Shown piece by piece: positions 24,098-29,620 of a DNA stretch of 35,124 nucleotides. The stretch is taken from NCBI GenBank assembly GCA_020536535.1, contig JAHLWZ010000142.1, positions 1-35,124 of the forward strand, written 5' to 3'. This stretch comes from Pelomyxa schiedti (taxonomy: Eukaryota > Protista > Evosea). The notes under the pieces were generated by a model. The model was not told the origin of the DNA and did not search any database. It saw nothing but the letters and a program-made list of their open reading frames with translations. The position numbers were made by a program, and so were the translations under genes. Within the stretch, counting starts at the first letter, position 1; each line of letters opens with the position of its first letter.

Positions 24098-26873
24098 TCA
24101 ATGTGATTCCGAGGGTGTTGCGGAATCTATCTGTGGCACAGAACCACAGGAAATGCCAGTGCACTCAATGATTCCTGACATGGTGGCTAAGTTGCTTGGA
24201 ACTTCGAATTTGACACCACACAACAGCTCGGAGAAATGAATGGCGGTTTTGAGATGCTCACTTGATATGCTGGTCTTGTAAGGGCAGAGGATTCTCGACG
24301 TGCCGCGAGCCAGTGCCATGAATATAACCAACTGGTCCATTGTGTATTCACAGACACAGCCTCCGGCATTGTAGATTTCCACAAGTCGTTTTACAGCTTT
24401 TTCAGCAACCTAGTTGAGGGTAAAAAGTTAGTTGAACTCTGGTGTATTTTTTATGGGTCTCACTTCTTGTGGGGATATCTCCGTTTTGCTTTCAAATAGA
24501 CTGTCAGCGGCAATTAGGCAGCCGGTTGATGTTTCCAGTACAAGTTGCACACCAGCAACTCCACTGGTTTTTTTCCTGGCTTCTTCATTCAGGGCTCTTC
24601 TTTCCTTGAAGGTCAGTCCACCGGTTTCCTCTGCAGAACCGGGAGTTTCAGTTCGGACTTGCTTAGCCTTATTTTTCCTGGCCTGCTTTGCTGCGGTATC
24701 GTCCTCAGCACTTCCGTCATCTTCGGGTGCAGGTATGATTGTAATGTCTTCTATACCAAAGCGGTCATGAATCATTGCCCTCACAATTGAAATCACGGAG
24801 CGCGGTAGGCGTGTTCGGCATGTGCCACCGCCGTAGGCTACACCTCTGACAGATATCGGAACTCCGCGGTCGGTTATGGTTGCAGCTGAGATGCCCCCAA
24901 TAACTGGTGTGATACACACTTCAACTTCACCTTTTCCCCATGGGTAGAAGCCACGCTTGTGAATATTCAGCTTCAAATTTTGCTCAGGTACTCCAAAAAA
25001 TCTGTGCAACAAAGGGAATAGTACCATCCTGAATTGCCAGTGAACATCTTTATGGTGGATGTAGGTGTTACCTGATATAATCGATTGGGGGGCTCCCCAC
25101 AACATTTGTACCGCCTCGCAAAGTCATAGTTACAGGCTGTTCATGTGCACCAAGCAAAGCACAAGGCAATGCTGCCTGTAGAAGAAGGGTTATTGCCCCA
25201 GCTGTGTGTGTATCTGGGAAAAAGTGGGTAGTGTGGTGTGATGAAGAGGTTAGCACCTGCATGAAAGGCTCCTCCGCGCAGTCCTTTCACACCTGGCCAT
25301 AAAAATAACTCTCCTGCACCTTCACAGTGCCCACCATACTAACAAATAATAGGCACTACAAATTAAAAAGGTTTTGTCATGCAAACCTGTATGGGTTCTG
25401 GTCGCACCAGCCCGTCACATAGGTCAGTGACTAATTTAGCCCCGGTGGAGTGCTGATGTCCCAGTCCTGGCTTTGGCCTACCTGCTCGTATGGAATGAAT
25501 GTGCAATGGTCGCCCTAGTAGTGCACCAAATGCAAGAGCCACACGGAGTACTTGTCCTCCCCCCTAAGTGAGTAAGATGTTTAAAAAACTTCACGCAGGA
25601 AAGTCAAGGTACCTCAAGAATGGATCCATCTACAAGAGGCAGTGGCGGTACACCAGAGCTCACAACATCTCTCTCTGAGGCAGAAGTGCTTGTTGTGACT
25701 GACGTGGTTGCTGACGTGGTTTCACGTACAGGCTCAATCACAGGAATAAATGACTGCAATATTGTAGCTTTTGGACCAGTGTGCTTCATGGAAACAAAGG
25801 GAAACACAGGGCCTCTAAGCACCCCTCTCCAACTGATGACACTTGTCCCGTTCAAGAAAAACTGCAAGTCACCACTCCCAAGATCAACAGACACACCAAT
25901 GATGTCCCCATCAGAATACTGGGGTTGATTTCTCATTTTCTCACCATGTACACGAAGAGTCCCTGGTCTGTTTGACTGTACACTGCCACCAGACCTACAG
26001 GAGGAATAGGTAAGAGCATCCACAAATGGAATCAATTTACCAAATGATACATTTGGTGTTATGCTTAGGGGATTCATCCACCCAAACGTCGGAATATGCC
26101 ACCTACAAATTGAAACCTACTGTGAGCGTGAAAGAAGAACAACAAGAAAATGGGTACCCCAATCCAATAAGCATCATCAATTGGATCTGATGCCCTTACA
26201 ACAAAAGTATGGATACCAGTACTGAACAGTTCCAACCCAACAACACCTATAAAGATAAATTCTTAGTATGTTCTATGTTTATTCCTCTGTACATAAAAAA
26301 AAAAAAAAAAAAAAGGAACAATAACAAACAGGTTTAGAATAAAAAAATAAACCAACCTCCCCAATCATCAGTTGTCTGAGAGACTGTCATTTTATCAGCC
26401 GAAAAAGCCATAGAGCGAGTGGCCTGCGCGTCATTCCACCCAATGTCACTACTCCGTCCCATAAACGCAGCAGAGCCCTTGCTCCCACCAAGCACCTTCT
26501 CGGCCGCCCCAGCCACAAACGGGCTCATCTCGCCACACGTCGACGTAGCGGTAGAGCTAGAGGCCGACGCGGCGGAGGCGGTACTCTTGGTTGAGCCTGT
26601 GGAGCGAGCTGCCGCGGTCGCACTTATGGGTGTCTGCTGGGACTTCCCCCGCCCCCTGGCGCTCGCCGCCTGGGTTGTTGCTCCCCCGCGTGCAGTTGCA
26701 TTTGCACTTGCATTTGCATTGGCATTTGCCCTGCCTCGCCCACGGTCACCACCTCCACCGCCTCGTTGATTGTTGTTATGAGGCTGCGGTTGTGTGTGCT
26801 GCTGTTGGGCGGCTGATTGCAGTATCCGAGTGAGGTCTGTTATAGACTTATCTGTGGTGTTGGTAGCCGACAT
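24098..26873 (-). CDS. RTCA: RNA 3'-terminal phosphate cyclase fused to an N-terminal RG/low-complexity region and a SPRY domain
   Basis: SPRY: FSADKMTV, FSTGIHTF, YSDGDIIGVSVDLGSGDLQFFLNG, GPVFPFVSM. The same exon runs into VDGSILE|GGGQVLR, then IRAGRPKPGLGHQH, TAGAITLLLQAALP, GGTNVVGSPPIDY, RGFYPWGKGEV, EYTMDQL and SEHLKTAIH (adenylated His equivalent present). Confidence 0.9.
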
Positions 26874-26956
26874 GAGACTGGCCTCTCGAAAACAAAAAAA
26901 AAAAGTTTTTGTTTGTTCATGAAATTTTTTCGGCAAACAAAAACGGGGTGTTGTTT

Positions 26957-29620
26957 TCAGTAGTCGGAAGGGTCAGCTTTGAGAAGAGAATCCAGTGCCT
27001 GTGAGGCCGACATTCTTTGATCACATGATGGTAGCAGCATGGCTCTCAGTGTTCTTTCCATTGCACCCCCGGAGAGTTCCGGCCTCAGTGGGGGGAGTTT
27101 GTCAGGATTAAATGTGGATTGTGAGGTGTTGGTGAGCGCCTGTGGGTCGGCACACATAAGCTGCCAGAAAACGAGCGCAATTGCAAATGAGTCCGCGTTC
27201 TTGTATGGAACCTTCACTATGTTGCTGTTGCTGCGCAGTCCTCTGTTGGCTGAAAGTGTGAGTGCGGCTATATTTGGGGGGTAGGTGAAGCTGTTTCCCC
27301 ATGGGCTGTCTCGGTTCAGGTCAATTGGGTATGTCATTTGCTCATTGAACTTGGTAACTATGGCCAATCCAAAGTCAATAACATAGATACGGTGGCCCTG
27401 AGAGGTTGATTTTATGAGCAAGTTGTCACCCTTTACCAAGTTCTGTGAGTTTCCTTTTGAGAAGCAGTTCTACTAACTTTTATGTCACGATGCACTGTGA
27501 AGTTATTTGCCAAATGGCAGGTGGCAGAGAGGGCTTGTTGCAGCAATAAAAGCACATCCTTTTTTGATGAAACTACAGTGCTGAATACTTTGTCAAACGG
27601 TACACCTAGCAAGCCGGGGTTAGGAATAATAATGATTACTGCAGCTGCCTACCACCGTGTGGCATCATAATCATCACTGATCGCTGTATTGACCACTCAG
27701 CATAAACAGGGTATCCTGTTGATCCAAGTTATTTTGGGATTGCAGGGTTAAGGAAGCAAATACTGGCAGCAATTTGTTGCACCCAGGAATCGGGAAGGGT
27801 TGCAAAAAACGTGCAAATGGGATGCAGAATGTTTGGATGAGAGGGAAGAATGGACAGACACTGTACTTCATTTCGGTAACTGAGGAAAAGTTCCTTATTT
27901 AATTTAGATAAAGCAGCTTGGGAACCTGTTTCTGAGTAGTGTTGGGGAGGGATTTATAGTAGCATTAACATCCATCATGAACTTGAGACAGAGTGGAATT
28001 TGTATTCTTGGGTGTCGGGCAAAGAACACAGCACCAAATGAGCCACAGGACAATAAACTCGGATCGATGAAATCATTTACATCCAATAGGAGGCAAGAGC
28101 GAGAAATAGACTCTAATTCCTCCTTTTCGCTTCTATATGGTTATGAGACCCAAAATCAAAGTTGGATGCAAAGCCTTAAAATTGCATTTTCTGCTTTTAA
28201 CACAGAGGATTGCTGCTCAAGATCGAGACATCTATTCCTAAGAAAGGAATTTTGGTTGTGCAGAGAGTAATAAAAAGGTACTGGTAGGATGCTATTTCGT
28301 TTTTCATCTCGGTTTTCGTGTAAGTACAAGCAATTTGAAATATGTGTCAAATACTGCCGGAATGTTTAGTCTCATCTCTGGCCTTTCTGGTGGATAGGCA
28401 TCATGGCGGATAACAATAAACCTGGGTTCTCCCTCATTAACCTTTTGGTCCTCCAGGCACTCAATCCCCTCTATCTAACAACCATAATTTAAAAAAAGAT
28501 AAACTCATGACTATACAGTTAAAATTGCTAATGCTTCTGGATCCACTCCAATTCTCCGTGATACTAAAGTACGAATGTCCTGGCAGCGTGTATTCTCAGG
28601 AAGGCGATATTTGAACAGTTTTCCTTCGTGCCCAACCTCGATAACGAGAAGCTTTGTTGGTATGGGAGGGGGATGAACACTCAGATAGATCTCCGTATTG
28701 CATACAACCGAATGCAATATCTGCAGTGCCAGCATTTCGGTTTCAGGGTTTTGAATATGGTTATCGATGGAGAAAATTCTCTCCGAGCGATAAGTGGATT
28801 CAAGGAAACTCCTCAGGTGCTCTTGCCTCTCTTTGGGGACAGTGTCAATGTGCGTTATCACCACTGTCGATCTAATTCCGTGATGTAAGGTCCACTCCAC
28901 CATCCGCTGAACAAAGAAACGAGGGTTCATTTCTGATCGGGGATCAGATGCAGAAATAACCCAAATCATTGAAGGTGCACGAGCAGAACAGTCTCCAAGC
29001 ATGTCAGATGTGTCCTTTCTCAGGTGAGACACAAGTGTTAAGAGTGTTTGTCATACTGTATCATTGTTGTGGCTTTGATTAGGTGATGATCCGCGAAGAA
29101 AGGAGCCGGACTTCACGGCTCCTGACAATATCTCTTGGGCTCTCTTTACTTCCTCTGAAGAATCCGCAAAGAAACCGGGAGAATCCACAAGAGTAATAGA
29201 GGGAGTGACAGAAATATCCTCAAGGAGAAAGGTGCCTTGGGACCCACAATCGTACTCGGTTGCAATCGGCAACTTACCTATTTTGGGTCCTTGGTGTCAC
29301 TTCGCGCCAAACAAATGCCAAAGCACAAAAAATCCGGGGATATTACCCATCGCTCTCAGTATCGTGTTTATCACCGACGAAATGCCGGAACCGCAGCGGC
29401 CCATAAGTGGTATACGAACGCAACTAATTCTCTGCGAGTGGCCGTGCTGCACGTACAACTGCGTCGCGGGCGTCCATGTCAAAAGCTGGTGCCTCAGTGT
29501 GGCTGCATCACCAGTCCCAACTGTGGGTACCCTGCTATTTGGTGACCCACCTGTGGCGCTCCCACAAGTTGCTGTGCTTCCATTGGTTTCAGCTACGTGA
29601 CTGTTACCAGTAACGTCCAT
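26957..29620 (-). CDS. Multidomain protein: IFI44-like P-loop domain, ubiquitin-like domain, coiled coil, PINK1-like Ser/Thr kinase
   Basis: IFI44-like: VRIPLMGRCGSGISSVINT, LVDSPG, EILSG, GIRSTVVITHID, EMLALQIL. Beta-grasp: GKLFKYRLPENTRCQDIRTLVSRRIGVDPE. Coiled coil: CLDLEQQSSVLKAENAILR. Kinase: CGSFGAV, LCLK, HPNI, HRDIK|GDN, DFG, WGNSFTYPPN, PYKNADSFA, LPPL, QRMSA. Exons join in frame through short introns. Confidence 0.78.

Follow-up and report, generated by a model that had tools for sequence, protein, structure and literature searches.

To our knowledge, the biochemistry of IFI44-type domains is poorly known even in mammals. For PINK1, the inserts Ins2 and Ins3 and the C-terminal extension have been defined as features of the kinase, and Ins3 and Ser205 are required for phosphorylation of ubiquitin and of the ubiquitin-like domain (Ubl) (PMC5679756). 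Analysis of DNA from the anaerobic amoeba Pelomyxa schiedti revealed a predicted gene, Pelo_1672, that apparently combines relatives of both proteins. A first reading of the sequence, made without database searches (the sequence-only reading), had considered such an architecture as not previously described. Consistent with this, no publication was found on Pelo_1672 or a GTPase-Ubl-kinase architecture, on IFI44-like GTPases in amoebae, or on PINK1-like kinases in Pelomyxa in the literature searched, the coverage of which was incomplete.

The predicted gene and its transcripts

The window, that is the whole stretch of DNA analysed, comprises 35,124 nucleotides. On its minus strand, a frame leading from an ATG at 29620 to a stop codon ending at 26957 is composed of 11 exons and specifies 733 amino acids, with no internal stops in the spliced model (Table 1). 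The public model KAH3766473.1, annotated as "hypothetical protein", has 729 amino acids and differs solely at the acceptor of intron 1, which is 57 nt long in our model (29346-29290, according to the length in a paralogue) and 69 nt long in the public one (29346-29278). For searches and folds of the joined protein, the public sequence was used. As genes of P. schiedti were predicted by Augustus and then improved by PASA/EVM (PMC8887013), the public model is not proof of every junction.

RNA contigs were derived from two single-cell libraries of one sample. Six introns are spliced in these contigs, all in the part encoding the coiled coil and the kinase. RNA depth, which is 9 at the 3' end, is down to 2.3 at 28330; coverage stops at 28332, leaving none over 28333-29620. 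Introns 1 to 3, located upstream of the RNA coverage, match a paralogue model encoding GTPase, Ubl, and PARP (KAH3744315.1) in position and phase (1, 0, 0) and are therefore credible. The four modules joined in frame by short introns, as described in the sequence-only reading, are thus in agreement with a 733-aa open frame and six introns confirmed by RNA, but the intron joining the two halves, intron 4, is not confirmed by RNA. Regarding the protein ends, a presequence or transmembrane segment is not evident, as had been stated before: the maximal hydropathy over 19 residues is 1.25, and the first 40 amino acids include one Arg and three acidic residues. An exon-by-exon Pfam search of the gene was nearly blank.

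Downstream of the gene, the X1 and X3 contigs carry a 4-nt insertion at 26952, just past the stop codon, representing an allele of the 3' UTR. The next open reading frame on the same strand after 26952 opens with an ATG at about 26874; over 26540-26850, 11 substitutions are present in X3.

Table 1. Features of Pelo_1672 and Parkin-like genes of P. schiedti
Feature	Position	Strand	Remarks
Whole predicted gene Pelo_1672 (Pelomyxa schiedti, KAH3766473.1)	26957..29620	minus	11 exons
IFI44-related TRAFAC-type GTPase fold, about aa 42-283	28673..29497	minus	Probably catalytically dead; AF2, fold and sequence homologues, tree
Degenerate P-loop GRCGSGIS	29378..29401	minus	Lys replaced by Ile
Intron 2 (within GTPase)	29056-29015	minus	
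Ubl (beta-grasp), aa 289-359	28403..28657	minus	Split by intron 3; profiles and predicted secondary structure
Intron 3 (within Ubl)	28516-28475	minus	
Putative joining intron 4, GT..GAG, 47 nt	28354-28308	minus	Not confirmed by RNA
Coiled-coil helix, aa 376-about 417	28096..28307	minus	Heptad repeat; two RNA-confirmed introns
Intron in coiled coil	28281-28238	minus	RNA-confirmed
GC-AG intron in coiled coil	28174-28133	minus	RNA-confirmed
PINK1-like Ser/Thr kinase domain	26980..28080	minus	Four RNA-confirmed introns
Four kinase introns	27925-27880, 27763-27716, 27652-27606, 27477-27431	minus	RNA-confirmed
Ins3-like insertion after HPNI, 32 residues	27684..27827	minus	Alignment to PINK1 structures
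Parkin-like gene, contig C451	50000-54500		Ubl with EST aligned to ubiquitin E64-S65-T66 (Ser65 equivalent)
Parkin-like gene, contig C194	500-4500		Ubl with Ser/Thr within the Ser65 stretch
Parkin-like gene, contig C291	67000-72500		Ubl without Ser/Thr in the Ser65 stretch

Domains of the predicted protein

The AlphaFold2 model of the N-terminal part (aa 38-372) is confident, with a pLDDT of 84. Its fold matches in the PDB are TRAFAC-type GTPases, and its neighbours in the atlas include IFI44-named clusters with TM scores of 0.59-0.60 as well as unnamed mollusc and chordate clusters reaching 0.65. The pairwise comparison with a fish IFI44-like domain yielded an E value of 8e-4. Sequence homologues constitute a subfamily detected in amoebae, cnidarians, amphioxus, and hemichordates, which is separate from the fish IFI44-like proteins in the tree. 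Classification as a generic AIG1/septin GTPase was rejected, since sequence homologues and atlas neighbours are IFI44-like, though the PDB matches are generic TRAFAC GTPases with no IFI44 structure among them. The assignment of this module to the IFI44/IFI44L type can thus be upheld for fold, motif order, and homologues, but the subfamily is distant from vertebrate IFI44.

The P-loop had been quoted with the motif GxGKSS, which is absent. It reads GRCGSGISS, the conserved Lys being replaced by Ile (ATT, codon 29383-29381). Of 50 scored proteins, 49 have this Lys and Pelo_1672 alone has Ile; in an alignment, Lys is likewise found in all 22 homologues. DNA run X3 spans the Ile codon, and no differences are listed there. 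Besides Lys, the Arg of DTRG, one invariant His, and one invariant Gly are lost; 28 of 42 conserved positions are retained, and the G2 Thr and the motifs DxxG and THxD are also kept. In a quick tree calculated with other long rows left out, the domain falls within the Ubl-PARP clade with an SH-aLRT support of 98, and its branch measures 3.07, compared to 0.28-1.06 in its relatives; in a quick tree of 67 rows, still including them, it grouped with the other long branches. As P-loop GTPases without the P-loop Lys usually do not bind nucleotides, the domain is probably a pseudo-GTPase whose fold is still being maintained.

For the adjoining ubiquitin-like module, which had also been recognized in the sequence-only reading, profile matches are weak (ubiquilin UBL, E=0.0055; also ubiquitin and Atg8 folds), and the AF2 model displays the beta-grasp order of secondary structure elements. 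With consistent secondary structure, though weak sequence scores, the assignment as a beta-grasp Ubl can be upheld. The stretch preceding the last strand, NEGEPRF (EPRF at 28429-28418), contains no Ser or Thr; the last such residue is located 18 residues before the last strand, and none is present in the final 23 residues of the domain. With the register taken from predicted secondary structure and not from residue-level superposition, the Ubl appears to have no equivalent of Ser65. The proposal that the kinase phosphorylates its own Ubl is therefore not supported, as no Ser or Thr is found at the position of ubiquitin's Ser65. In addition, the Ubl was inherited from the GTPase-Ubl-PARP family described below; it was thus present before the kinase and is not necessarily phosphorylated by it.

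In the C-terminal half, the coiled coil takes the place of the N-terminal helix of PINK1 in the structural alignment. The catalytic residues of the kinase are intact, namely Lys in LKFMM, Glu of alphaC in YRNEV, HRDIKGDN, and DFG, and 46 of 54 family invariants are retained. The APE position is PPN, most paralogues having PPE or PPD, and Asn in place of the APE Glu may result in lower kinase activity. Overall, the kinase is expressed and looks active.

When a profile of Pelomyxa paralogues was compared to the PDB, the top 12 matches were PINK1 sequences, aligned over the whole domain with an E value of 3e-16; PIM1 was matched locally (2e-8). With the predicted kinase model (pLDDT 72), the top 24 rows in Foldseek were PINK1, and in VIA the top two rows contained PINK1 with Z scores of 21.3 (rmsd 5.9, 311 aligned) and 20.7, followed by the next non-PINK1 structure at 19.6. 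The margins are modest at an identity of about 20%, and in single-sequence phmmer searches CaMK1G and CDPKs ranked equal to PINK1 or higher, with matches that were short and local, PINK1 being separated only by profile and fold searches. The C-lobe exon alone produced no match in the PDB. The kinase had been assigned to the PINK1 type before, and the rank of PINK1 in profile and fold searches as well as the insert after HPNI and the GN before the APE position are in line with that assignment. Judged by its features, it is a relative of PINK1 and not an orthologue, the placement being a ranking by similarity. The Ins3-like insert comprises 32 amino acids versus 35 in louse PINK1 and is alike in its proximal half, but its distal half, which contains PEG in PINK1, is not conserved. 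Ins2, located between alphaC and HPNI, is absent, alphaC leading straight to LPSHPNI where louse PINK1 is about 15 residues longer. Likewise, there is no C-terminal extension, since the model ends at human 514 / Tribolium 488, where that of PINK1 begins. The Ser of NPSPT pairs with the second Ser of ESNST in PINK1, with an uncertainty in register of one to two residues, and the first Ser of ESNST, which we take to be the regulatory Ser ahead of alphaC (Tc205/human 228), has no Ser partner.

These features bear on the self-contained, ROCO-like switch proposed in the sequence-only reading. In such a protein, the kinase would be controlled by GTP binding and would in turn modify the Ubl of the same chain, just as PINK1 phosphorylates that of Parkin. 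The domain order GTPase-linker-kinase is as expected for such a switch, but the GTPase is not of the Roc type: no match to Roc or COR was obtained, and the GTPase is followed by the Ubl. Although the G2 Thr, DxxG, and THxD are retained, the P-loop Lys is lost and the Ubl lacks a Ser65-type acceptor. PINK1 is the nearest solved kinase and an Ins3-like insert is present, but the features of PINK1 for ubiquitin binding are only partly kept: the distal half of Ins3 and the position of the regulatory Ser are not those of PINK1, which depends on Ins3 and Ser205 to phosphorylate ubiquitin and Ubl (PMC5679756). A switch of this kind is considered very unlikely.

The junction between the GTPase-Ubl and kinase halves

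The claim of a single polypeptide depends entirely on intron 4, which decides whether one protein exists. This intron is of typical length, brings the two frames together, and is located within about 10 nt of an intron in a paralogue. Its GAG acceptor was detected neither in 37 other introns of five annotated models nor in 30 conserved kinase introns. In the sole RNA contig at this site (X1 record 2), the 25 nt from 28332 to 28308 are unspliced, yet the next two introns are spliced; the extent of the contig was derived from the joint and depth tables. It consists of one 151-nt record with a depth of 2.3 from a single-cell library, and a Nextera adapter detected at 26940 indicates that the ends of RNA contigs are tagmentation points. 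The unspliced contig is compatible with a weakly spliced transcript that retains the intron as well as with a kinase that is transcribed separately.

If intron 4 is retained, the GTPase-Ubl frame ends at TGA 28306-28304, which overlaps ATG 28307-28305 of the kinase frame. The coiled coil begins precisely with this ATG, and there is no intergenic space between the two halves. No indel is present at the junction in DNA or RNA contigs, and the junction DNA is single-copy in the genome. A fragment spanning the junction (residues 290-480 of KAH3766473.1) was not obtained from any other sample, and homologue searches did not reveal the GTPase-Ubl-kinase fusion in a second organism or transcript. Three alternative joins were rejected: the acceptor at 28292 runs into a stop codon, the donor at 28354 combined with 28238 is out of frame, and the GC donor at 28331 combined with 28238 is in frame, but contradicted by the RNA contig.

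From these data, two abutting genes, or one locus with mainly separate products, could be envisaged, the fusion being either a join made by gene prediction or a minor isoform. A stand-alone pseudo-GTPase-Ubl protein would end at TGA 28306-28304, and a coiled-coil/PINK1-like kinase would start at ATG 28307, preceded by a 5' UTR extending to at least 28332. Stand-alone GTPase-Ubl proteins are known in the GTPase subfamily (P0012, P0021, and the C76 locus), and the unspliced stretch ahead of two spliced introns, the otherwise unseen acceptor, and the position of the ATG precisely at the coiled coil would be accounted for. However, two genes would require that the upstream coding exon harbours a promoter and that the stop codon of the first gene overlaps the start of the second, an arrangement uncommon among eukaryotic genes on the same strand, and retention in one or two molecules explains a single record of such low depth with tagmented ends. 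Two genes are regarded as a tentative and less probable solution. Since they need a promoter in a coding exon without intergenic space, and since both halves have their closest relatives in multidomain fusions, one polypeptide is favoured, at somewhat better than even chances. The public model KAH3766473.1 likewise joins both halves.

Origin, possible function, and comparison with known systems

The genome of P. schiedti (52.4 Mb, 5337 contigs) was searched for relatives of both halves. Three paralogues, on contigs C1057, C571, and C927, encode the GTPase-Ubl cassette with an intact GxxGxGKTS followed by a PARP catalytic domain. The same layout is found in Mastigella eilhardi (EP01105 P018729) and in two environmental assemblies: P0003 is encoded on an intronless JGI contig of the metatranscriptome type, and for P0005, from an ENA assembly, a PARP gene call directly follows GTPase-Ubl. 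Among 108 matches to the cassette, Pelo_1672 alone has a PINK1-like kinase. Because of its wider spread, GTPase-Ubl-PARP is likelier to be the older state, from which Pelo_1672 would be derived. On the kinase side, about 90 matches to the C-lobe were detected in the genome, and the N-termini of this family are varied. The closest paralogue, Pelo_11758, is 55% identical over the kinase and has ankyrins ahead of the coiled coil; four kinase introns are common to both genes, with identical positions and phases (2, 1, 1, 0). Shared intron positions and the tree indicate that Pelo_1672 is a lineage-specific chimera. The GTPase-Ubl cassette would have replaced the ankyrin-type N-terminal module of a coiled-coil/PINK1-like kinase gene, with recombination probably at or near the intron just after the Ubl.

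Such a chimera could also be decaying and functionless, left behind by gene shuffling in a genome rich in repeats. The long GTPase branch, the loss of catalytic residues, the weak joining splice site, the single copy, and the low expression might be interpreted in this way, but about 375 upstream codons are open and intron ends canonical despite roughly 3 changes per site, residues of the fold core are retained, and the kinase half is spliced and intact. Decay is therefore regarded as quite unlikely.

Additional members of the GTPase subfamily were encountered. On C1057, at about 500-2100, a second IFI44-like GTPase gene (KAH3742710.1) with a Cys-rich N-terminus and a Ubl-like tail is arranged head-to-head with the GTPase-Ubl-PARP gene, and on C571 the start of the GTPase-Ubl-PARP gene is preceded, at a distance of about 300 nt, by the end of a separate PARP-like frame (L022:1700-1790). 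Two further members, C277:16570-17900 and C76:87100-88600, have no evident PARP or kinase, the latter having a Ubl-like tail. In public models, the subfamily is also combined with TIR (P0009, Branchiostoma belcheri) and with an SH3-SH2-Tec-type kinase (P0023, Ptychodera flava), which could be real convergent fusions or model joins.

Taken as a whole, the best explanation, to which we assign about even chances, is one gene encoding a lineage-specific chimera with a pseudo-GTPase docking module and a kinase acting in trans. The GTPase would now be a nucleotide-independent docking module; its target may be that of the active GTPase-Ubl-PARP paralogues, or it may form pairs with these proteins. 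By docking of GTPase-Ubl on a partner or surface, coiled coils would be clustered or dimerised, and the kinase would be activated by trans-autophosphorylation, as in PINK1. It would then phosphorylate substrates in trans, leading candidates being ubiquitin or the Ser65-type Ubl of Parkin-like ligases, and not its own Ubl. Partner binding, activation of the dimer, and substrates are inferred. The likely setting would be cytosolic stress or microbe surveillance rather than control of mitochondrial import, a context of defence being suggested only by association with the PARP fusion and with the TIR and Tec-kinase fusions of the same GTPase subfamily in deuterostomes.

At least three Parkin-like genes, defined by Pfam matches to RING0 or RING1 and an internal Ubl, are present in the genome (Table 1) and are candidate targets of the Pelo_1672 kinase. 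That the fused protein is real and at the same time one receptor of a non-animal phospho-ubiquitin pathway, in which the many PINK1-like kinases of Pelomyxa, equipped with swappable sensors such as the IFI44-type pseudo-GTPase-Ubl taken from the PARP-linked family, phosphorylate ubiquitin or Parkin-like ligases at Ser65, appears unlikely. If true, PINK1-Parkin chemistry would act in cytosolic defence or in the control of symbionts, and this in an amoeba that has no ordinary mitochondria.

New at the Pelo_1672 locus are the swapped effector, a dead P-loop, a Ubl in which Ser65 is missing, and a junction that is weak. In several organisms, the GTPase-Ubl cassette is attached to PARP; in Pelo_1672, a PINK1-like kinase apparently takes this place, and the GTPase is disabled. 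This natural effector swap supports the view of IFI44-type domains as modular targeting units. The active GTPase of GTPase-Ubl-PARP and the dead one of Pelo_1672 constitute a matched pair for testing, and the Parkin-like ligases of the same genome offer a direct test of ubiquitin-Ser65 signalling outside animals and away from mitochondria. The weight of these considerations is moderate for a single-copy chimera of a single species with a junction unconfirmed by RNA.

Compared to known systems, Pelo_1672 resembles ROCO/LRRK2 and DSTYK in that a single chain carries a domain with a GTPase fold ahead of a protein kinase, and DSTYK clusters were the top whole-protein matches by language-model features (0.93), which is a lead only. 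Roc-COR is absent, and as GTPase and kinase subfamilies are unrelated, the likeness is one of layout. IFI44/IFI44L and invertebrate IFI44-like GTPases have the same fold and the same arrangement of motifs (a helix preceding G1, DxxG, THxD, and a C-terminal helix), but Pelo_1672 belongs to a separate subfamily outside the vertebrate clade, has no TLDc, has lost the P-loop Lys, and continues with a Ubl. PINK1 (human, Tribolium, Pediculus; 9eih, 7mp8, 7t4k, 6eqi) is the nearest solved kinase by profile and fold and shares the Ins3-like insert, the GN before the APE position, and a helix ahead of the N-lobe. In contrast to PINK1, the Pelo_1672 kinase has no Ins2, C-terminal extension, presequence, or TM helix, its distal Ins3 is different, and PPN replaces APE. 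Pelo_11758 carries ankyrin repeats at the N-terminus in place of GTPase-Ubl, followed as in Pelo_1672 by coiled coil and PINK1-like kinase. The archamoebal GTPase-Ubl-PARP proteins (KAH3744315.1; Mastigella eilhardi EP01105 P018729) keep the P-loop Lys and end in PARP, whereas Pelo_1672 has a coiled coil and a kinase, but they share with it the GTPase-Ubl cassette and, in KAH3744315.1, the first three intron positions, and represent the direct parent family.
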